From contig MCFH01000010.1 in NCBI GenBank assembly GCA_002104945.1, forward strand, positions 496,001 to 560,000: a stretch of 64,000 bases of DNA. The letters run 5' to 3'. Source of the stretch: Piromyces finnis finn (Eukaryota > Fungi > Neocallimastigomycota). Each line of letters opens with the position of its first letter. Position 1 is the first letter of the stretch. Under the pieces are notes generated by a model. It was not told where the DNA came from, did not search any database, and worked only from the letters and a program-made list of their open reading frames with translations. This document shows, in pieces, positions 9,082 to 64,000 of this stretch. Both the position numbers and the translations under genes were made by a program.

Positions 9082-14736
<5,655 letters not shown>

Positions 14737-31949: not shown

Positions 31950-37166
<5,217 letters not shown>

Positions 37167-49800: not shown

Positions 49801-50361
49801 TAATTAAATTTTATTAATTATTTTGTGGCATTCAATACTAAATAATCTAAATTATTACTAATAAACTTTTTTCTTTATTTATTTATTTAAGGCGCAGTAT
49901 TACTAAAAGATACATTTTATCATACCATTTTTTTTTTTTGTTTTGTTTTGTTTTGTTTTTTCAAATTTAAAAAAAAAAAAAAGCAAGCCAAAAATCAAGA
50001 GTAGGTAGTGATTAACATTCATTATTCTTTTTTTTTTTTAGTTTTTTGTTTTTAAATGGTTTGAAAACTAACTAAATTTGTTCAAATGAATATTTAAAAC
50101 TTTTATTAAAAATGATGTACAAATAAAAATAAAGATTAAAATAAATTAGCACTTTTATATATATATAAAAAAAAGTTAAAATTTGATTTCCTAAAAAAAT
50201 GTTTCATATTTAATTGAAGAAAACTTTATTTTTAATTATATAAAAAAAAATAAATAAAAAAATCATAAAAGATGAAATAAATTAAAGTTTATTAATAAAA
50301 AAAAACGATATTGAGGAATATAAACCATCGACTTTTTTTTTAAAATAAATTCTTTTAAATG

Positions 50362-50424
<63 letters not shown>

Positions 50425-50653
50425 TATTAATTATATTTTATAAGATTCAATATTGAAAGAAAGGTAAAATACCAGTCCATAACCATCAATAACCACCACT
50501 TCAAAAAAAATAAAAAAATTTTCAATTGGTTGATCTTAATTAATATTAATATGAATTTAATAAATTAATAGGAATATTATAGATTTATATATGTAAATCA
50601 TAAATTTCATCCCATTAAAATATTTTAATCCTTTTATAATTTTTTATGTATTT

Positions 50654-51961: not shown

Positions 51962-52440
51962 ATGGCTAATAGATCTTCGTATTATAGACTTCCTATCTTG
52001 GACAAAACCCATTGCAACGAAGATGTGTGGAAACGTCAGATGGAAGCATGGTTTTCTAGAGAAGGCATTGTTGATAAGAATGAAAAGTTCGATACCATTG
52101 TCGGTTGTATAGATTTCCCAGAAATTGTTGATGAACTAATTAGGTTTGAACGCATGTGGAACAGGCCACCCTCTTTGGATGAATGTATGCCATCAATTAG
52201 GAATAGGTTAGCCTATTGGAACAACAAACAGGATGGTTTTCGCCGATTAAAGATTATGGTCATTCGTCCTGGAGAAACAGTGGATGAATTCAATAATAGG
52301 TTTTTGGACCTTTACCATTCTTTGGATGCGGAATATCGCCCCAGAGTTTCTGTGTACGACTATATGCATGCTATCCGTAGTCGTCCAGAATTACAACATG
52401 CCCTCACCATTCGCGAGCCCGCAACTATTGATGAGGCTTG
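51962..52440 (+). pseudogene. Interrupted retrotransposon Gag (capsid) of element C
   Basis: Contains the major-homology-region-like GETVDEFNNRFLDLY. The ORF-track tail VTNLLDN is read-through into element B's LTR. Confidence 0.75.
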
Positions 52441-52999
52441 TGTAACGAATCTATTAGATAATTAATATTGTCTTAATGGTTAGTATTTAAGACATTAATC
52501 TGGATCACTCGGGTTCGACTCACACCTTGATCCGAAATCTATTTTAGATTATTTATTTAACAATTTAATTTATGACTCATAGAAACTTATAGAACTTATT
52601 CGAAAAAGAATAAGTTCGAATATTCGAAAAATCAAATATTTTTTGTAATTTTATCACGGGATTCATTTTATGCAATTTTTAATTAATTTAAAGAACAATC
52701 TAGAAAGATAATTAAAATTTTTGATTTAGCCACATCAGATTTAGAAAAAGTATAAATAGAAGTGGTTTGAATCGAAAATTAAAAAATTGTGTTTTTATTA
52801 ACTATTAACTTTTAACTTTTAAATTTTTAAAAAAAAAAAAAAAAAAAAAAAATATTTATTATTAAAAAATAATTTAAATAAAAAATAATTAAAAAATTTT
52901 AATAAATAAAATTAATTGACTTATTGGGATCAAAATTATTATCTATATAAAGTTTATTAATTACCACATTATTAAATATTTATATAGATACGCGTTACA
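52441..52999 (+). repeat. 5' LTR of element B (559 bp)
   Basis: TGTAAC...GTTACA terminal inverted repeats; TATAAATA at 52751; first 10 nt identical to LTR-A (TGTAACGAAT). Confidence 0.88.
52469..52533 (+). promoter_or_regulatory. tRNA-derived A-box/B-box (Pol III type 2-like) cassette in LTR-B
   Basis: TAATGGTTAG (D-loop/A-box) and GGTTCGACTC (B-box, 52512-52521); G18-to-G53 spacing is 35 nt as in tRNA. Confidence 0.7.
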
Positions 53000-53183
53000 A
53001 TAAAAACACCAGTTGTAACATATTCCCTTTACCTTAATTAATTTGTTTATTTTTCCTACCTGTTATAGTGTCTACCCTTGGTTTAAATATCCACTTGTAT
53101 ATTAGTATCTACCTGACTTTTGTACTTTTCTGTTTTGCTACTTTAGATACTACTTCTGTTTACTCCTTTATTATTTCTCTAGG

Positions 53184-53612
53184 TGTAAAGAAATGTGTCT
53201 TTAACAATAAAACAAATTATAATATTTACTAAATAACTTAGTAATATTAACACTTTAAAATAATCTGTAAATTATTAATTTATAAAAATATCATTAAAAA
53301 CACATAGAATTTAACTTAATAAGTTAGTGTTTAATAATATAATTATTTATTAATAAAATCTCGATTCTTTAAAATATTTGGGAAAATTCACTCGTATTTA
53401 TACTAAAAATTTTTTAAATTAATTTATAAAATTTTTTCAACTTAAAATTCTTAACCAATCAATAATCTTCATATAAAATAAAATTTAAAAATAAAATAAA
53501 ATTATAATTTTTTTAAAATAGTATCTATGAGGTCTCGAACTAGTGTCATTCAGACTCAAAGTCTTAGCTACTAACCACTAAGACAATTTAGTTATTTCTA
53601 GTATTCGTTACA
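53184..53612 (-). repeat. 3' LTR of element A
   Basis: Minus-strand TGTAACGAAT...CTTTACA; matches 59266-59694. Confidence 0.96.
53521..53586 (-). promoter_or_regulatory. tRNA(Gln-TTG)-like A-box/B-box cassette in LTR-A (second copy at ~59603-59668)
   Basis: Sense TAGTGGTTAGTAGC-TAAGA-CTTTGAG-TCTGA-ATGAC-ACTAG-TTCGAGA-C: D-loop, 4/5-bp anticodon stem with canonical loop around TTG, 5-nt variable loop, B-box. Acceptor and T stems are not intact. Confidence 0.72.
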
Positions 53613-53624
53613 TGGTCCTCCTCC
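53613..53624 (-). other. Polypurine tract of element A
   Basis: Minus-strand GGAGGAGGACCA immediately precedes the 3' LTR. Confidence 0.8.
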
Positions 53625-53931
53625 AGGATTCGGATACCAGACGAATCTAGAATTTTAATATTTAAATATATGTTTTTCTTTTTTAATAAACTAAACTAAG
53701 GAGTGAATTTTCTTAATTATAAAAATACATTTAATATAATAAAATACATTTTTTTTTTTTTTTTTTTTTTAATATTACTAAAGTTAAAAATAAAATATTG
53801 ATAAATTTGATATTAATAAATTGTTTAATAATAAAATTGATATTGATAATGATATTAATAAGTTTTGATAATAATAATAATTGTGATTTTAATATTAATA
53901 ATAAATATAATTTGAATTTTTTAACTATTTT

Positions 53932-56900
53932 TTATTTCTTTCTATTAAATTTTTTAAGTAGCCCCTTGCAATTTAGATTTTCTTCAGGCTCCCACGAAGC
54001 TTCATTAATTGAGTAACCTTTCCATTTAACTAAATATTGTATTTTTCCGTAATGTTTTCTTTTATCCAGAATTTCTTCAACTTCATATTCTTCTTCATTG
54101 TCAACAATAATAGGTGGCGGTGGCGGTTGAGATCTTCCAAACTTATCGTCGACATATTTTTCAAGATTGGATACATGAATGACGGGATGGATCTTAATAG
54201 ATTTTGGGAGACTTAACTTAAATGTGACATTTGATATTTTTTCCAAGATTTTGTATGGGCCGAGTTTTCTTGGCTTAAATTTTTTATTTCCTTTGTGGAT
54301 AATTAAAGAACTATCCAGCCAAACTTTGTCACCAACTTTAAAATTCGGAGCTTCTTTTCTACGTTTGTCAGCATGCTTCTTCTGGGTTTCCATGGCAGAT
54401 TTTAAATTTTCTTTTAAGGTATTAATTAAAGTTTTAAAATCTCTTGTAAACTCTTCTGCTCTTGGGACTTTAGATAAGTCTGGAATAACTGGTGAATATT
54501 TTGGATGAAAGCCGTAATTCAAAAAGAATGGAGAAAATTTGGATGATTCTTGAACCACGTTGTTATAACTAAATTCTGCAAGACTAAGAAAACTTTTCCA
54601 ATTTGAACCTTTATAATTTGAGAAACATCTTAAATATTGTTCTATAACGGAGTTCACCCTCTCCGTCTGACCGTTTGATTGATGATGAAATGGAGTAGAC
54701 AACTTAAGTTCAATGCCAAGGGAGGAACAGATGGATTGGAAGAATTCAGAGGTAAATTGAGAACCTCTATCCGAGACAATAGATTCAGGTAGGCCATGAA
54801 GACGGAAAATATTATCAATAAAGGCTGTGGCTGTTTCGGCGGCGGAAGGAATACTTTTGAACGGAATGAGATGAACCATTTTTGTAAGACGATCAACAAC
54901 AACAAGAATGCAAGTGAAACCAGAAGATGAAGGCAAATCTGTAATGAAATCCATTGAAATGGATGACCAAGGACGCTCAGCAATATCAAGAGGATTCAGA
55001 AGACCATAAGGTTTATGACGAAAGGTTTTTGAACGACAACAAACTTCACAAGAACGAACGTAGTCTTTAACATCAGAAGAAATAGAAGGCCACCAGAAGT
55101 CTCTAGCAATAAGAGAAGATGTTTTCTTTATTCCGAAATGACCAGCTGAAGGAGAGTCATGACAGAGCTTTAGAATTGAAAGACGACAATTTGGAGGAAC
55201 ATAGATTCTGTCAGTAAAAAGGAGAAAACTATTGCTTAAGGAAAATTTGTCAATTTGAGGGTGAGGTATTGGAGGTTTCCTACAATCAAGATATTCACAG
55301 ATTTTATTGTAAAAGTCATCATTTATATATTCGGAAAGAAAAGAATCACTAATGGATGAAACAGAAGTCACAATGGCACAAAAGTTTTCAGGGCGAAGAA
55401 CATTAAAAGGAACATCAGAAGAGGAATTCGAATTGATAGCATAATCAGGACGACGAGATAGAGCATCAGGCTTACCGTTAGAAGAACCAGAACGATAAAT
55501 AATAACAAAGTTAAATTCAGAGAGGAACAGAGCCCAGCGAACAAGACGTTGAGACATTTTTTCAGGTTTCTTTTGATAGAGTAAATTTCGATGATCCGAG
55601 TAAATCTTAAAAGTAGAAGAAGAGCCTTTAAGTAGATGACGCCATGTTTCAAGAGCAGCAACGATAGATAAGAGCTCTTTATCATATATTGGATAATTAC
55701 GTTCAGGACCAGTAAGAGAGCGAGAAAAGAAAGCAACTGGATGGGTCATATTATCAATTGGAGAGACTTGCGAGAGAATAGCACCAATGGCAAAGTTACT
55801 TGAATCAGTTTCGACTATGAATGGAAGTTCACGATTAGGAAATATAAGAACAGGAGCAGAAACAAATAAGGACTTGAGTGAATCGAAAGCATCTTGAGCT
55901 TCTTTAGACCATACAAATTTAACATTTTTCTTCAAAAGTTTATGCAAAGGATGAGCGATCTTTGCAAAATTTGGAATAAATCGACGGTAGTAGTTCGCAA
56001 GACCAAGAAAAGATTGAACCTCTTTAACATTAGATGGAGTAGGCCAGTTTAAAATAGAAGAAACTTTATTTGGGTCCATGTGAATACCATCAGTAGAAAT
56101 CCTATGACCAAGGAAATCAATAAAAGAAACAAAGAACTCGCATTTTTCCAATTTAGCATAGAGCCCAGCATCCCTCAGGAGTTTCAAAACAGTTTTGACA
56201 TGAGATATATGAGATTTATAATCAGAGGAAAAAATAATAATATCATCTATGTAAGAGAAAGCGAATTTACCAAGAACGTCTTCAAGAACATCATTAATGA
56301 AATGTTGAAAAACAGCAGGTGCATTTTTCAACCCAAAAGGCATCACACAGTATTCAAAATGACCTAACTTGCAAGTAAAAGCGGTTTTATATTCATCACC
56401 ACTTTTAATCCTGACCAAGTTATAGGCAGAACGAAGATCCAATTTTGAGAAAATCTTCCCTTTTCCAAGATGTTCAAGCATATCTTGTATAAGAGGAAGG
56501 GGATAAGAATCACGAATAGTTATGGAGTTTAATTGGCGATAGTCAACACACATACGAAGTTGACCGTTTTTCTTAGGTACAAACAGAATAGGAGCTCCCG
56601 CAGGCGATTTTGATTTTCTAATAAATCCTTTCTTGAGATTTTCTTTTATATATTCTTCTAAAGCAATTGATTCGGTTTCTGTTAGAGGATAAATCGGTCC
56701 ATAAAACAGTTTTGAATTTTCTTTGAGTTTTATTTCACAATCGTATGGACGGTGTGGAGGAAGTTTTTCAGCATTAGATTCATTGAAGACATCAGCAAAG
56801 TCAGAGAGAACATCCGGAAGTATAATAGAAGAATTGGGTTCTGATTTAGAGTTTGAATCGGATTTGAGAATAGAATTGGATTGAATATTAGAATCAGAAA

Positions 56901-58374
56901 AAGAAGTCAAAACAGAAGTTGGTTCTTGATTTGAGAGAGACGAAGTAGAAAAGTTAACAGAAGACTTCTTAGAAACAGAATTGTTAATATTTTTTGAAGA
57001 ACCCGAACAGAGAATAGTACAAGTACGATTAGTTTCGTTTTGAGATTGGATGTTTTGTTTATCGACAAATATAGGGTAAGCGAATGAATCATGCGGAGGT
57101 TCGTAGGAAGGATCTTCCATTGCAGGAAAAGCAGATCTTTCTTCAGGAAATTCAGGGACATTATTGGAGAGTGTTATACAACGATTATAACAGTAATCGG
57201 ATACAAATGAAATTTTGTTCTTTGTGAAATCGATAGAAGGATTGTGTTCTTTAAGCCAGTCTATTCCAAGAATACAAGGATAATAAGGTAGATCAGTTAC
57301 ATAGAATTGTGTTCGACAGAGATGATCTTTGTAGCGAAGATTCAAAGGAGATGTAATTCCAAAAAGAGATTGTCGACCACCGATACCAACGATATTTGGG
57401 AGGTTACCATCATCATGATAAGGAATGTTATTATCGTTACAGTAATCTACATCAATTAAATTAAGTTTGGATCCTGAGTCAATAAGAATATCCGTATTTA
57501 GTTCATAAGAAAGTTTAAATTTAGTTGTCATTTTATTATGAGTTTTGTTTTCTTCTTTAGGAGCGGATATAAGTGTGGGAATAGATATTAGTGAAGGATT
57601 TTCACGATCTTTATTCTTTCTTTTTGGACAATTATTAAGCTTATGACTTGAAGCACCACAATACACACAAAGATTTTCTTTCTTTCTTCTTTCCTTTTCT
57701 TCGTTTGAGATAGGGCCATGGTTATTCCTGTTTGTAATGGACTTTGTTATTTTTGAAGAGTGATGAAAAGATCTTTTCTTTCGGTTTTGGTCATTGTTTG
57801 AACCAGAAGGGAAAAAGGTATGGTGTGTAGATAATCTTGAATCGATTCTTGAAGCAATAGTCTGTAATGAAAGAAGATCCCTAGGACCCGGAAACATTTC
57901 CAAAATACGAACGGCAACTTGTTGATTAAGGCCAGCTATAAATGCATCCATTTTGGCTTGTTCATTCCAGTTTGATTCATCAGCATAGCGGTTAAATTCC
58001 AAGATATATCCTCTAATTCCTCCTAATCGGCGTTGTTTTAAGGTTCTAAGCATTTGATTTGCAACATAGGTAGCATCGTTATATCCATAAAAAGCCTTAA
58101 ACCTGTCAACAAAAGCTTGGTAGTTATTAAGACACGGATCATGGTTGTTTATAAGAGTAGCAGCCCAATTCATAGCGTCCCCATAAAGTCTTGATATTAT
58201 ATAGAGAATTTTGGTTGCGTCGTCTTGATACCGTTCAGGATATAGCATAAGCACTAGCTCCACCTTAGCTAAGAAACCCTTCAGATACCTGCGATCCCCT
58301 GCAAAACCATCCTTAAGAGTTGCGTTTTCGAAAATATTATTATTATCCATGTGGTTGTTTTCGTTCTCTTCCAT
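53932..58374 (-). CDS. Gag-Pol polyprotein of element A (Gag, CCHC knuckle, protease, RT, RNase H, integrase, chromodomain), 1480 aa
   Basis: [43 protein letters not shown]...[38 protein letters not shown]...YLVKWKGY. Single ORF with no frameshift. Confidence 0.98.
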
Positions 58375-59255
58375 AGTACTTATGATGTTTTCTTTAATAA
58401 GCTTTAATAAATTTGTAAAAATAATAGAATAAAGTATTTAATTATATTTATTAATTGAGTAAATCTTTTTATTAAATAATAATATAAACCAGATTATATA
58501 GTGTTAAACCATCAAATATATAACCTGTTTTATTCTTTATAATAAGTCCTTCGTAGCTCTTCACGATAACACGTATAAAGTCGATTGTTAATATTAATTA
58601 AATTAATAAAAGAAAGGAACGGTGTAAAAATTTTTTTTAGTGTCTAACTTATTGTTAGCAATAAAAATTATTACAGGTTTTCTTTCCCTATATCAACCTT
58701 ATCCGAACGTAGAAGTATTATGTATAAGAGTTTAACTTCTCACGCTAAAGGAGTTATAAAGAATATTATTTTATATTATTACAATTTTAATAAATTGTCT
58801 TAACAATTAATAATTATAATTAAAAATTAGAAATTGTTTTATTAGAAAACTTAATTTTAAAATGTATTAATTAAGAAATATTATTTTATTAAAGTAAGGC
58901 ATTTCCGGCTATTTTCCGGTCTATAATCAAACAGCAAAAGATAGTATACAACTATAAATCTCACGCCAGCTTGCTTATTACAGCGTCTTGTACGTGGTGT
59001 ACCTCGGATTCTCCTACTTCCTTATTCAAAGTAGAATAGCTCAGAGCCTGCCAACCCAATTATTGTACAGGTTAAACTCGATCCCGTTAATCTTTTACTT
59101 TTTATAGTTTGAATTATATACCGCTTCTAAAGCGTACTAATTCTACTACTTTAAGTAAAAATATTTCTTTAAAGAAAAGCTTCAACAATAAAACTTAAAA
59201 GTTTTATCTATAACAATTTCTTAAACACTAAGGTATTAAGCTTTTATATTATAAG

Positions 59256-59265
59256 GAGATTTTAT
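59256..59265 (-). other. Self-priming PBS of element A
   Basis: Sense ATAAAATCTC directly after the 5' LTR is complementary to GAGATTTTAT inside the LTR (59435-59444), ~40 nt downstream of TATAAATA. Confidence 0.78.
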
Positions 59266-59694
59266 TGTAAAGAAATGTGTCTTTAACAATAAAACAAATT
59301 ATAATATTTACTAAATAACTTAGTAATATTAACACTTTAAAATAATCTGTAAATTATTAATTTATAAAAATATCATTAAAAACACATAGAATTTAACTTA
59401 ATAAGTTAGTGTTTAATAATATAATTATTTATTAATAAAATCTCGATTCTTTAAAATATTTGGGAAAATTCACTCGTATTTATACTAAAAATTTTTTAAA
59501 TTAATTTATAAAATTTTTTCAACTTAAAATTCTTAACCAATCAATAATCTTCATATAAAATAAAATTTAAAAATAAAATAAAATTATAATTTTTTTAAAA
59601 TAGTATCTATGAGGTCTCGAACTAGTGTCATTCAGACTCAAAGTCTTAGCTACTAACCACTAAGACAATTTAGTTATTTCTAGTATTCGTTACA
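59266..59694 (-). repeat. 5' LTR of element A
   Basis: 429 bp; no difference from 53184-53612 found by eye. Confidence 0.96.
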
Positions 59695-59731
59695 CTAGGC
59701 AATAGACACTACCTTTGTATATTGTTTTACA

Positions 59732-59810
59732 ACTCTTTTGGACTCTCTTGGACTCTTGGACTCTCTCGGACTCTTTTGGACTCTTTTGGACTCTTTTGGA
59801 CTCTCTTGGA
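59732..59810 (+). repeat. ~8 tandem copies of GGACTCT(C/T)TT in the element B leader
   Basis: Read directly, 55-135 nt upstream of the gag ATG. Confidence 0.9.
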
Positions 59811-59865: not shown

Positions 59866-62800
59866 ATGGATGAAGAATTGATGAACCATGCTACGTTGAA
59901 GGATGGTTTCGCTGGAAATCGTCGTTTCTTTAAGGGTTTTCTCGCTAAAATAGAATTAATCTTTATGGTCTACCCAGAGCGCTACGCGGATGACGAAGCA
60001 AAAATCGTCTATATTATTTCAAGACTATATGGTGAAGCCTTGAATTGGGCTGCATCATTAATTCACAACCATGACGAATGCCTATTAAATTATGACTCAT
60101 TTGTTGCAAAGCTTAAATCTGTGTTTGGCAACAACGACTCAACATTTGTGGCTAATCAAAAGCTTCGAACTATAAAGCAAAGGAAAATCGGAGAAATTCA
60201 AAAATATATTCTTGAATTTAACCGATACTCTGATGACTCCTCTTGGAACGAAAGTGCAAAAATGGACGCCTTCTTAGCTGGACTACAAGATCAAGTCGCC
60301 AATAGAATTTTAGAAATGTTTCCCGGTCCACAAACGCTACTAAATTTACAAGTTATAGCATCAAGAATCGATTCTAGAATCGATACCAATAGAAGATTTT
60401 TCAACAACAATCACTCTAATAGCACCAATCAAAACCGAAGAACTGAAGCAAATAGAAAACCTTTCACTTCGAGAAATAAGAAAACTTACGGACCGCTTAC
60501 CTCAGAAGAAAAGGCTAGAAGAATTAAGGAGAATCTCTGTTTATATTGTGGTTCTCCAGATCACAAGTTAAACAACTGTCCAAAAAGAAGTAAAAATGAA
60601 AAAACAGCTGGGACTCATATTTCTAATTCTATGCCTGAAAAGAAACCTAGAATAAGATTCTCCGATAATCCCCATTTGAAACAACCAGTTTTTGAGTTCC
60701 AACTCAATACTTCCGACGTCTCCGTTAACACTAAACTACTAATTGATTCAGGATCCCAACTTAACCTAATAGATGTGGTCTTTGCAGAAGAAAACAACAT
60801 TCCTTTTGATAAATCCGTCTCTCTCGACAAAATCTCTGGTATTGGTGGGGAACAACTAGTTTTAGGTAAATCCATCCCAATTTCAATTAAATACAAAAAC
60901 CACCAATGTAAAACTATATTTTATATTGTAGACCTCCCGGGATATTGTGGTATCTTAGGTGCTGAATGGTTACATCAGCACAACCCTATTATTAACTTCG
61001 TTGAAAAAGAATTATCTTTTAATTCAAATTTCTGTTTGTCACATTGCTCTGTCATTCCAAATGTTGCCCCTACTTATGTTATTTCTTCTATTTCTAATGA
61101 TTCCAAACCTTCTTGTAGCACTTCAACCAATTCTTATATCCATGATTCTGTAACAAATCTTCCAAAAAGTCAAGATTCCACCACTAACACTTCTAGTAAT
61201 CAAGAAGTTATTCTACCCGCTGAACTTCAAGCCTTTGAAGATGTATTTAATGAAAAAGCCGCTGAACAATTGCCGCCACATAGGCAATACGATTGTGAAA
61301 TCCGTCTTAAGCCGGACTCCAAACTTTTCTATGGACCAATTTATCCTTTAACGGATAAAGAATCAATGGTATTGAAGGAATACATTGATGAAAATTTGCG
61401 AAAAGGTTTCATCAGACCTTCGAAGTCTCCGGCTGGTGCCCCAGTGCTTTTTGTCCCGAAGAAAAATGGTGAACTACGTCTATGTCAAGATTATAGGAAA
61501 TTAAACGAAATCACAATCCGTGATTCATACCCTTTACCATTAATTAATGACATGTTGGAACATCTAGGTAAAAGCAACATCTTCTCCAAACTTGATTTAA
61601 GATCCGCTTATAATCTTGTGAGGATCAAAGAAGGTGATGAATTCAAAACTGCTTTTACTTGCAAATATGGACACTTTGAATATACTGTAATGCCGTTTGG
61701 TTTGAAAAACGCACCTGCAGTATTTCAACATTTCATTAATGATGTGCTTGAGGGAATCTTGGGAATATTTGTCTTTAGTTATATTGATGACTTAATAATT
61801 TTCTCGGAAAATTTTAAAACCCATGTAATCCAGGTTAAAGAAGTACTTAAAAGACTTAGAAAAGCGGGACTTTACGCAAAACTTGAAAAATGTGAGTTCT
61901 TTGTCCCATTTATCGATTTCTTAGGTCATCGTATATCTTCTGAAGGTATTTTAATGGATCCAAAGAAAATTGCATCTATCTTGGAATGGCCAACTCCTAA
62001 AAGCGTTAAAGAGGTTCAAGCGTTTCTTGGGTTAGCTAATTATTATAGAAGATTCATTGCCGGTTTTGCTGAGATCGCACAACCACTGAATGCGTTACTT
62101 AAGAAGGATGTTAAATTCTGCTTCTCTCATCAGTGTGAAAATTCTTTTAGTTTAATCAAATCCAAATTTGCTTCTTCCCCTGTTCTTGCATACCCGAATC
62201 GTGATATACCTTTCATAGTTGAAACGGATGCAAGTAATTTCGCTATAGGAGCAATCCTTTCACAAACGAATCCAAAAGACAAGTCGGTTCATCCAGTGGC
62301 ATTTTTCTCTAGATCGCTTAGTTCTTCTGAAAGGAACTATCCGATCTACGATAAAGAACTTTTAGCAATTGTAGCTGCTTTAGAAACTTGGCGACATCTA
62401 CTCAAAGGAACTACTCAGCCTTTCAAGATTTTCTCGGATCATAGAAATTTGCTCTACCAGAAGAAACCCGAAAAAATGACTCAAAGATTAGTTCGTTGGT
62501 CTCTGTTCCTTGCCGAGTTTAACTTTATCATCGTTTATCGGTCGGGTTCTGCTAATGGTAAACCTGACGCTTTATCTAGAAGACCAGATTACTTAGAAAA
62601 TTTTAAGTATAACAATGACATTCCAAATTCCGTCCTTAGACCCGAAAACTTTTGTGCCATGGTTCTGGATAACAATCCCCTTATGGATAAAATCATTTCA
62701 AATAGCAAAGATGATAAATTTTACTTTGAAGTATGCAAATATTTAGAAACTCAAATTCCCCCAGTCCCTCATTCGCAAATCGAAAACTTTAAAATTCAAG

Positions 62801-64000
62801 ATGGTGTATTATTATTCAATAATAGGATCTATGTCCCCCAAGATTGTCGTTTGGAAGTTCTTAAAATTTGCCATGACTCACCCTCCGCTGGACACTTCGG
62901 ATTAAAGAAAACTACTTCCCTTATTGTTCGTGACTTTTGGTGGCCTTATCTCTCAGTCGATGTCAAAGAATATGTTAGGTCTTGCGAAATATGTTGCCGA
63001 TCAAAGGATTCTCGACACAAACCCTATGGATTTCTCTCCCCTTTGGAAATTGCTGAACGTCCTTGGTCTTCCTTATCTATGGACTTTATTACGGATCTCC
63101 CACCTTCCCAAAAGTATACTTGCATTCTTGTAGTCACCGATAGATTAACTAAATTATGCCACTTCATTCCTTTTGAGAACATCCCTTCTGCCTCCGATAC
63201 TGCTGATGCTTTCATGATCAACGTTTTTCGTCTCCATGGATTACCAAATGAAATTCTTTCGGATAGAGGTACTCAATTTACCTCTAAATTCTGGAATTCA
63301 ATTTGCAAATCTTTTGATATAAACCTAAAATTTTCTTCTTCCTACCATCACCAAACTAACGGGCTGACGGAGAGGGTAAACTCCGTTGTAGAACAATACC
63401 TAAGGTGTTACTCAAATTATAAAGGCTCTAACTGGTACAAGTTCTTACATCTTGCTGAATTTAGTTACAATAATGCCGTTCAAGAATCTACCAAAACTTC
63501 ACCATTTTTTGCTAACTATGGCTATAATCCAAAACATTCTCCAATTTTACCAAGTCGTACCGAGATACCAACTGCGGATGAATTCACAAGAAATTTCAAA
63601 GAAATAATTAAAACTCTTAAAGATAACTTGAAGAAATCCATTAATCAACAAGAAAAATTCGCAAACAAACACAGAAGTAAAGCCCCTGAACTCAAGGTAA
63701 ATGATAAAGTATGGATCAACAGTTCTTTAATAATGCGTAATGGTAATAAGAAGTTAAAACCTAGAAAACTTGGTCCGTACAAAATAATTGAAAAAATTTC
63801 TCCAGTTTCTTTCAAATTGGAGTTACCAAAAGAAATTCGCATTCATCCAGTCATCCACGTTTCAGAATTGGAACCCTACCATGAAGACAAGTTCAATAGA
63901 AAGCAACCGCCACCTCCGCCGGTTATTGTGGATAATAAGGAAGAATTTGAAGTCGAAGAGATATTGGATAAAAGAAGATATTATGGTAAAGTCCAATATC
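59866..64000 (+). CDS. Gag-Pol polyprotein of element B (open to the window end; reaches the chromodomain)
   Basis: [20 protein letters not shown]..., CLYCGSPDHKLNNC, LIDSGS, YIDD, ETDASNFAIGA, SDRGTQF, ...[20 protein letters not shown], all in one frame. Probably missing from the ORF track because there is no stop in the window. Confidence 0.95.
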   Translation, partial: MDEELMNHATLKDGFAGNRRFFKGFLAKIELIFMVYPERYADDEAKIVYIISRLYGEALNWAASLIHNHDECLLNYDSFVAKLKSVFGNNDSTFVANQKLRTIKQRKIGEIQKYILEFNRYSDDSSWNESAKMDAFLAGLQDQVANRILEMFPGPQTLLNLQVIASRIDSRIDTNRRFFNNNHSNSTNQNRRTEANRKPFTSRNKKTYGPLTSEEKARRIKENLCLYCGSPDHKLNNCPKRSKNEKTAGTHISNSMPEKKPRIRFSDNPHLKQPVFEFQLNTSDVSVNTKLLIDSGSQLNLIDVVFAEENNIPFDKSVSLDKISGIGGEQLVLGKSIPISIKYKNHQCKTIFYIVDLPGYCGILGAEWLHQHNPIINFVEKELSFNSNFCLSHCSVIPNVAPTYVISSISNDSKPSCSTSTNSYIHDSVTNLPKSQDSTTNTSSNQEVILPAELQAFEDVFNEKAAEQLPPHRQYDCEIRLKPDSKLFYGPIYPLTDKESMVLKEYIDENLRKGFIRPSKSPAGAPVLFVPKKNGELRLCQDYRKLNEITIRDSYPLPLINDMLEHLGKSNIFSKLDLRSAYNLVRIKEGDEFKTAFTCKYGHFEYTVMPFGLKNAPAVFQHFINDVLEGILGIFVFSYIDDLIIFSENFKTHVIQVKEVLKRLRKAGLYAKLEKCEFFVPFIDFLGHRISSEGILMDPKKIASILEWPTPKSVKEVQAFLGLANYYRRFIAGFAEIAQPLNALLKKDVKFCFSHQCENSFSLIKSKFASSPVLAYPNRDIPFIVETDASNFAIGAILSQTNPKDKSVHPVAFFSRSLSSSERNYPIYDKELLAIVAALETWRHLLKGTTQPFKIFSDHRNLLYQKKPEKMTQRLVRWSLFLAEFNFIIVYRSGSANGKPDALSRRPDYLENFKYNNDIPNSVLRPENFCAMVLDNNPLMDKIISNSKDDKFYFEVCKYLETQIPPVPHSQIENFKIQDGVLLFNNRIYVPQDCRLEVLKICHDSPSAGHFGLKKTTSLIVRDFWWPYLSVDVKEYVRSCEICCRSKDSRHKPYGFLSPLEIAERPWSSLSMDFITDLPPSQKYTCILVVTDRLTKLCHFIPFENIPSASDTADAFMINVFRLHGLPNEILSDRGTQFTSKFWNSICKSFDINLKFSSSYHHQTNGLTERVNSVVEQYLRCYSNYKGSNWYKFLHLAEFSYNNAVQESTKTSPFFANYGYNPKHSPILPSRTEIPTADEFTRNFKEIIKTLKDNLKKSINQQEKFANKHRSKAPELKVNDKVWINSSLIMRNGNKKLKPRKLGPYKIIEKISPVSFKLELPKEIRIHPVIHVSELEPYHEDKFNRKQPPPPPVIVDNKEEFEVEEILDKRRYYGKVQY

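Follow-up and report, generated by a model that had tools for sequence, protein, structure and literature searches.

A conserved tRNA-like block, possibly an RNA polymerase III promoter module, in the long terminal repeats of a chromovirus clade of Neocallimastigomycota

Why would an autonomous retrotransposon keep a tRNA-like sequence near the start of its long terminal repeats (LTRs)? The question arises at the right end of a 64,000-nucleotide stretch of the Piromyces finnis genome (GenBank assembly GCA_002104945.1, contig MCFH01000010.1, positions 496,001 to 560,000 of the forward strand; hereafter the window, whose own numbering is used below), where two Ty3/gypsy elements lie one nested in the other in DNA of 12-24% GC. 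The inner one, element A, is a complete chromovirus, and the outer one, element B, continues to the window end. In each of their LTRs within the window (LTR-A and LTR-B) lies a block with matches to the two internal promoter boxes of tRNA genes:

52469-52522, plus strand: block in the 5' LTR of element B, with the A-box match at 52469-52479 and the B-box match at 52512-52522; covariance-model score 71.7 bits
53531-53585, minus strand: block in the 3' LTR of element A, with the A-box match at 53575-53585 and the B-box match at 53531-53541
59613-59667, minus strand: the same block in the 5' LTR of element A, found by motif scan and covariance model

Covariance-model searches used R1, a profile of 62 non-coding columns built from ten blocks. 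The tRNA-like block in these LTRs is real and conserved. As for what it does, we give a probability of roughly one half to the reading that selection maintains it in U3 as a tRNA-derived type-2 RNA polymerase III (Pol III) promoter module.

The block spans about 55 bases near the LTR start, approximately nt 28-82, and begins at nt 28 in LTR-A and at nt 29 in LTR-B, as an initial annotation of this DNA had described. The LTR strings quoted there are present in the window as written, and the shared LTR start it reported was found as well, the first 10 bases being identical in all three LTR copies (two of A, one of B). When the A-box and B-box consensus published for tRNA genes (PMC12193147) is taken as reference and R is also accepted at A-box position 2, LTR-A has one mismatch in each box and LTR-B two in the A box and one in the B box. 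When the first 130 LTR nt were shuffled 2000 times with dinucleotides preserved, no shuffle equalled the box score of LTR-A, and none that of LTR-B. The B box starts 44 nt after the A-box start in LTR-A and 43 nt after it in LTR-B, the canonical distance in tRNA being 44. Likewise, the 36 nt (A) and 35 nt (B) that had been counted between the D-loop GG (its first G) and the G that precedes TTCGA were recovered, and the claim of a tRNA-type A-box and B-box architecture with tRNA-like spacing is backed by the consensus and shuffle scoring.

In their best local alignment, LTR-A and LTR-B match over nt 1-78 and no further; their remainders align with a score of 42, against a shuffle mean of 41 and maximum of 56. 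This bears out the earlier observation that the rest of the two LTRs cannot be aligned. The block is thus conserved while the rest of the LTR diverges, as was initially proposed. The start of the LTR also differs from the rest in composition, with 31-46% GC in its first 100 nt versus 13-20% in the remainder.

To extend the comparison, a protein search gave about 30 close relatives, one of them a named element from Pecoramyces ruminantium, and the DNA of their LTR starts was obtained through contig look-ups and one metagenome scan. The latter, based on an integrase-chromodomain alignment, returned chiefly distant chromoviruses of other fungi and a single close relative (L013). No usable LTR start came from P0001 or from L093 and L102, whose contigs end too early, and the 5' LTR of L094 appears truncated. 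The block was found in 12 LTR types of the clade, including one cut by a contig end past the first hairpin (L097), one degenerate (L098) and one variant form (L001/L002). It lies at LTR nt 28-36 in the two window types (winA and winB) and in L011, L013, L099 (identical to L100 and L101), L012p, L012m, L095p, L095m and L097. Across 11 LTR types the boxes together have 1-4 mismatches (A box 0-2, B box 1-2) at a start-to-start distance of 42-44 nt, and per type 0-6 of 2000 shuffles equal the box score. The tRNA-invariant positions T8, A14, G18 and G19 are kept in the A-box part; G53, T54, T55, C56 and C61 of the B box are kept in every type that has the region, and A58 in all types except L098. 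These positions are conserved also where they lie outside the hairpins described below, while the segment between the boxes and the spacer from the LTR start to the block vary freely.

How far does the block extend beyond these lineages, and how many independent witnesses do they make? Polyproteins of the clade are 65-76% identical to one another and about 30% identical to their nearest outgroups. In a neighbour-joining tree of the polyproteins, built without support values, block-bearing lineages stand on both sides of the clade; therefore, the block is probably ancestral to it. In a whole-LTR comparison the LTRs of winA, L011, L012p and L099 can be aligned throughout, so they make up one LTR lineage and not four, while the remaining types share little past the first 80-130 nt. 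One lineage nested in the clade, L096, which the initial annotation passed over, has a different LTR start (from L096 6146) without the block; its polyprotein is called as two open reading frames (ORFs). The block is absent from 80 chromovirus loci of other fungi (38-51% identity in the integrase region), as judged by motif scan and covariance model. The sole motif match among these distant loci is a genuine tRNA-Leu gene (L043 4387-4459, minus strand, about 0.8 kb downstream of the integrase end), the one tRNA gene in all loci examined. Over the window plus about 490 kb of loci, a small genome sample, the covariance model matched at LTR starts only and gave no free-standing copy. Pattern scans of genome and viral contig collections for the junction of purine tract and LTR gave no match, and a blastn search of one block against phage records gave chance matches in protein genes and none in tRNA genes.

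Some further observations concern the contigs themselves. LTRs of different lineages stand head to head or nested (L012 723 and 820, L095 568), and nesting is frequent in the contigs seen. In L001 (6368 onward) and L099 (5504 onward) a sequence like a primer-binding site (PBS) directly follows the 3' LTR, as in tandem copies that share an LTR or in an assembly wrap-around. The 5' untranslated region (UTR) of L012 has a GC-richer segment at about 1640-1790, where a hairpin resembling a T arm encloses a TTCGAA loop; ARAGORN calls no tRNA there. Integration beside the block, in the manner of Ty3 or Tj1, was considered and rejected: the four nested insertions seen are either in coding sequence or separated from any block by 96 nt to several hundred nt.

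Is the block, then, a tRNA gene? It is not, as the cloverleaf is gone. With default settings ARAGORN calls no tRNA in the blocks, and Rfam searches with E-values up to 10 give no tRNA match for LTR-A, LTR-B or L095, the only hits being chance matches to snoRNA and sRNA families; at gathering scores, nothing is found in the whole window. That the acceptor and T stems are lost had been stated from the start, and these negatives for A and B agree. A comparison with the tRNA family RF00005, also suggested then, had a divided outcome: LTR-A, LTR-B and L095 have no match, and L001 has the sole one, a weak 11.1 bits against a gathering score of 29, in an alignment where a D arm and a stem like the acceptor are present, the anticodon arm is shortened and the T arm, with a 7-nt loop, is good. 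The anticodon arm with TTG (Gln) proposed for LTR-A does not hold up. Other LTR types are without it, so the TTG carries no weight, and ARAGORN makes the call only at 80% thresholds. At those thresholds two blocks are called versus 2.2% of shuffles, and at 70% thresholds 10 of 11 blocks versus 19% of shuffles. The block thus resembles the head of a tRNA-derived short interspersed nuclear element (SINE), with the boxes retained and the cloverleaf gone, and its origin from a tRNA is likely.

As the feature was picked by eye and no cloverleaf is present, the resemblance might be due to chance in a region conserved for unrelated reasons, or the block might have been carried along neutrally, for instance as a recently inserted SINE. 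The shuffle tests for the boxes and for ARAGORN argue otherwise, as do the retention of the block across lineages at 65-76% protein identity while the remaining LTR cannot be aligned and the lack of a free-standing copy in the DNA scanned. We therefore consider this explanation very improbable.

A second layer of conservation is the secondary structure of the block, in which two hairpins are formed:

52470-52493, plus strand: LTR-B hairpin 1, 7 bp with a 10-nt loop carrying the GG motif
52501-52517, plus strand: LTR-B hairpin 2, 6 pairs of which three are G-U; its 3' arm is the first six B-box bases
53561-53584, minus strand: hairpin 1 in the 3' LTR of element A
53536-53552, minus strand: hairpin 2 in the 3' LTR of element A

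Across the types, hairpin 1 has 7 bp and displays the GG motif in a loop of 8-13 nt. A 7-bp hairpin that displays the D-loop motif, with an exchange of G-C for A-T between A and B, was part of the initial annotation, and both are real. Hairpin 2 was overlooked there; in it a complementary stretch upstream pairs with the first six B-box bases, the 5' half of the box, over 5-8 bp. In a 12-sequence alignment, standard pairs fill 83% of cells versus 26-53% when the partners are slid by 1-3 columns, and four pairs, in eight cells, have changed on both sides. The observed covariation score is reached by 5 of 500 column shuffles. A covariation check had been proposed along with hairpin 1, and compensating changes do stand above both the slid-partner and the column-shuffle controls, in a sample that is small and made up of related sequences. 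RNAalifold predicts both helices unaided, with five pairs that still pair after double changes, and folds of single sequences give the same two-hairpin shape with z-scores of -1.0 to -5.5. Several G-U pairs occur, on the sense strand only, which favours the sense RNA over the opposite strand or duplex DNA. The structure is not uniform: the first hairpin is in a shifted register in L095, L097 and L001, and in L001 the second gives way to a stem resembling a T arm, whose 7-nt loop contains the B box.

These hairpins could be a cis-acting structure of the genomic RNA or of its DNA strands, with a role in stability, export, packaging or reverse transcription, the tRNA likeness being a matter of ancestry. 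U3 belongs to the 3' UTR of the genomic RNA. The excess of paired cells with changes on both sides, the unaided folds, the strand bias of the G-U pairs and the conservation of the hairpin-1 loop past the A box would all be expected of such a structure. However, A58 and C61 are conserved though they lie outside hairpin 2, the hairpin register differs in L095, L097 and L001, and L096 keeps its priming signals without the block. Moreover, no co-varying complement of the hairpin-1 loop was found elsewhere in the LTR or in the 5' UTR. Kissing of this loop with R/U5 or the 5' UTR was a candidate that we dropped, the matches being just 6-7 nt long and without co-variation. A purely structural role in the genomic RNA, the main rival of the Pol III reading, is in our estimate possible but doubtful.

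To place the block relative to the genomic RNA, the signals for its transcription by RNA polymerase II (Pol II) and for its reverse transcription were located:

52751-52758, plus strand: TATA-like box of LTR-B; the PBS-complementary site at 52789-52798 is taken as the R start
53000-53010, plus strand: self-priming PBS of element B, complementary to 52789-52798
59255-59265, minus strand: self-priming PBS of element A; its complement is LTR nt 251-260 (59435-59444), 40 nt past a TATA-like box
53613-53647, minus strand: purine tract and 6-bp hairpin with a 9-nt loop, directly upstream of the 3' LTR of element A

In eight families the 10-11 nt past the LTR are complementary to a site within the LTR that follows a TATA-like box by 34-40 nt; the match amounts to 10-11 of 12 nt, and both sites change together across the eight families. 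Judged by this pairing, the elements self-prime in the arrangement of Tf1 and Tj1, which is seen here in Neocallimastigomycota. The initial claim that no tRNA primer is needed holds accordingly, the PBS being complementary to the element's own R start, although it may match a host tRNA as well. R begins at about nt 251 in LTR-A and about nt 349 in LTR-B; these positions put the block within U3 and leave 130-180 nt between it and the Pol II TATA box downstream. A scan for sigma-70 promoters and terminators gave background level, by a method not applicable to a fungus.

Fungal upstream elements usually sit at such a distance from the TATA box. Given this and the fact that the block is the only GC-richer part of U3, it might activate the Pol II promoter of the LTR from upstream, or be some other site at which a protein binds the DNA; the likeness to the boxes would then be functionally meaningless. 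The compensating changes in both hairpin arms do not fit a fixed DNA-binding specificity, though, and a joint box match at tRNA spacing is very rare in shuffles. An upstream element of this kind seems unlikely to us.

The tRNA likeness could also serve replication. In Ty3, U3 sequences anneal to the D and T arms of a tRNA as a second primer-binding site, and the U3 of the present elements might likewise anneal to these arms of a cellular tRNA and bridge the ends of the genomic RNA. Each hairpin does consist of one arm in the tRNA sense and one antisense arm, and the antisense arms could in principle anneal to a matching tRNA. In order and orientation, though, the boxes follow the tRNA sense strand, and a PBS that pairs and co-varies with the element's own R start in eight families implies no tRNA primer. 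Of all the explanations weighed, this is the one we find hardest to credit.

Nor does plus-strand priming account for the block. The purine tract and the hairpin upstream of it are 92% identical over 40 columns in nine lineages (element A, L001, L011, L013, L095, L096, L097, L098 and L099), the rest of the 3' UTRs being unalignable, and in L095 the stem has exchanged G-C for A-T. Together they are probably the plus-strand priming signal. Since L096 keeps tract and hairpin almost unchanged despite its blockless LTR, the block is not part of that signal.

We return to the reading of the block as a Pol III promoter module. Under this scenario, a tRNA remnant, or the head of a tRNA-derived SINE, would have entered U3 in the ancestor of this Neocallimastigomycota chromovirus clade. 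TFIIIC would bind the A and B boxes at LTR nt 28-82, and transcription by Pol III would begin at about LTR nt 10-25, within the variable spacer, and end at a T run 10-23 nt past the B box, to give a two-hairpin RNA of about 75-100 nt. The downstream Pol II unit, with its TATA box and R start 130-180 nt away, would make the genomic RNA. Conservation of box positions outside both hairpins points to recognition of the boxes themselves, and the upkeep of the hairpins suggests that RNA, and not DNA alone, is under constraint. The T runs expected of a terminator are at hand in both window elements:

52542-52545, plus strand: first run of four T past the B box in LTR-B, 19 nt beyond the box
53515-53518, minus strand: first run of four T past the B box in the 3' LTR of element A

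No run of four T occurs from the spacer through the end of the B box, and the first run of at least four T begins 10-23 nt past the box in 11 of 11 types; such a geometry is met at 2.4% of positions in the LTR remainders. As the block is GC-richer, this is consistent with a terminator but is not proof of one.

The likeliest benefit to the element would be a TFIIIC-type chromatin barrier, or an open-chromatin mark, before the LTR promoter. Chromatin barriers made by TFIIIC and tRNA genes are known (PMC2040200, PMC4502379), a B2 SINE acts as a boundary (PMC8136502), and the aiming of chromodomain integrases at silent chromatin is background cited in PMC4600332. A TFIIIC barrier would suit the present elements because their chromodomain integrase is expected to aim at such chromatin. 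TFIIIC binding, Pol III transcription and a benefit to the element are predicted from motif conservation, and a Pol III-type function of the block is plausible.

Several observations weigh against this reading. Rfam gives no tRNA match for LTR-A, LTR-B or L095 and ARAGORN none by default, as noted above, and position 52 of the B box is A rather than G across the A lineage. The block is degenerate in L098 though the ORF is intact, and L096 is without it. As the types are related by descent, the independent block-bearing lineages number about four, not eleven. T runs are common in this AT-rich genome, so their geometry is weak support for a terminator. TFIIIC binding requires no hairpins; their upkeep is a constraint on a single strand and could equally stem from the 3' UTR of the genomic RNA. 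It is a more tentative suggestion, which we hold to be possible but not probable, that the whole LTR is a two-polymerase unit, in which a working Pol III gene of tRNA origin, right at the beginning of U3, would yield a structured small RNA together with a TFIIIC boundary; the unit would be kept clade-wide because it shields or aids the Pol II promoter behind it.

The two elements that carry the block in the window have the following parts:

53184-59694, minus strand: element A, a complete autonomous chromovirus of 6511 bp inside the 5' UTR of element B
53184-53612 and 59266-59694, minus strand: 3' LTR and 5' LTR of element A, 429 nt each, identical
53179-53183 and 59695-59699, no strand: 5-bp target-site duplication of element A, read directly
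53932-58374, minus strand: single unbroken ORF of element A for gag, protease, reverse transcriptase, RNase H, integrase and chromodomain, 1480 amino acids
52441-52999, plus strand: 5' LTR of element B, 559 nt, with TG...CA ends
59866-64000, plus strand: polyprotein ORF of element B, uninterrupted over 1378 codons up to the window end

Pfam matches in the ORF of element A are to capsid, reverse transcriptase, RNase H, integrase, SH3_Tf2-1 and chromodomain (Chromo, E-value 7e-16), and its 5' UTR (58375-59254) measures about 880 nt with some GC-richer parts. Its full length and intact polyprotein are in line with the autonomy that the initial annotation ascribed to these elements. Element B has the domain order of A up to SH3, the window ending before the expected chromodomain. 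Its sole interruption is the nested element A, which splits its 5' UTR; the part of its ORF within the window is unbroken. Directly past the insertion point of A, in the 5' UTR of B, lies a tandem array of about 8 copies of a 10-nt unit (59732-59810). On the other side of LTR-B, a 167-amino-acid ORF of higher GC (51962-52465, plus strand) continues into the first LTR-B bases; Pfam gives no match for it, it does not resemble the gag of element A, and it may be a gene or other element interrupted by B. Elsewhere in the window, long microsatellite arrays of ATA/TAT type occur at 11380-12000, 12850-13450, 33060-33400 and 50330-50430, in surroundings of 12-16% GC.

If the Pol III reading is true, Pol III blocks would no longer be confined to miniature elements, as a clade of full-length, seemingly intact chromoviruses would keep one beside an ordinary Pol II promoter. 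These elements would then offer a natural case for what TFIIIC sites do for a mobile element in a highly AT-rich genome; the host genome is, to our knowledge, among the most AT-rich eukaryotic genomes known. For annotation, the finding would bring the caution that a tRNA-like match in the assembly of an anaerobic fungus may mark the start of an LTR. Self-priming of the Tf1 type in Neocallimastigomycota is documented by these data as well, the two pairing sites co-varying.

With respect to known systems, priming is the simplest comparison. The present elements share with Tf1 and Tj1 (PMC4600332) a PBS complementary to the 5' end of their own transcript, a Tf2-1-like SH3 domain in the integrase and the gag-pol organisation. 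In LTRs of the Tf1/Tj1 type, by contrast, no tRNA-like block has been reported, and Tj1 is tied to Pol III genes by its integration site and not by its own sequence. With regard to chromatin, TFIIIC and tRNA-gene barriers and the B2 SINE boundaries (PMC2040200, PMC4502379, PMC8136502) are cases of B-box DNA that acts on neighbouring chromatin via TFIIIC, and B2 is itself a mobile element that carries a boundary (PMC8136502). Barrier function was measured in those systems, whereas here it is inferred from motif conservation. As to the form of the block, the fungal tRNA-derived AfuSINE2 (PMC5063351) likewise has degenerate A and B boxes, no cloverleaf and an oligo-T end. SINEs, however, are free-standing and moved by long interspersed nuclear elements, whereas the present block was found only at LTR nt 28-82.

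The nearest parallels are miniature terminal-repeat retrotransposons (TRIMs). Cassandra and Ajax have a promoter for Pol III from a small RNA gene in both LTRs (PMC10886601), as is predicted for the present elements. Unlike the elements here, they are non-autonomous and their promoter is 5S rRNA-derived (type 1); no Rfam match to 5S rRNA was found in the window LTRs or in the whole window. [quoted passage not shown] The novelty that the initial annotation saw in the block for fungal LTRs was therefore overstated, as tRNA-like sequences in LTRs, fungal ones included, were described in 2024. That account deals with miniature non-coding elements only, whose autonomous partners are argued to rely on Pol II (PMC10886601). 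Our literature search found no description of such a block in Neocallimastigomycota or in autonomous LTR elements, and Neocallimastigomycota are not among the Helenus hosts listed (PMC10886601).

In Helenus and in the present elements alike, the tRNA-like sequence of the LTR is conserved mainly at boxes A and B and is mostly not a functional tRNA. Fungal Helenus elements have 5-bp target duplications, as element A does, and insertion of a SINE into an LTR is their proposed origin (PMC10886601). However, Helenus elements are 311-1263 bp long, non-coding, primed by tRNAs and thought to be wholly transcribed by Pol III, whereas those described here are autonomous, 6.5 kb long and self-priming, have a separate downstream TATA box and R start, and are Ty3/gypsy chromoviruses. 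As they are neither short and non-coding nor, judging by the PBS, tRNA-primed, the present elements are not Helenus. They look like the same idea as Helenus, realised in chromoviruses that are full-length and self-priming, have a Pol II promoter apart from the block and conserve two hairpins.

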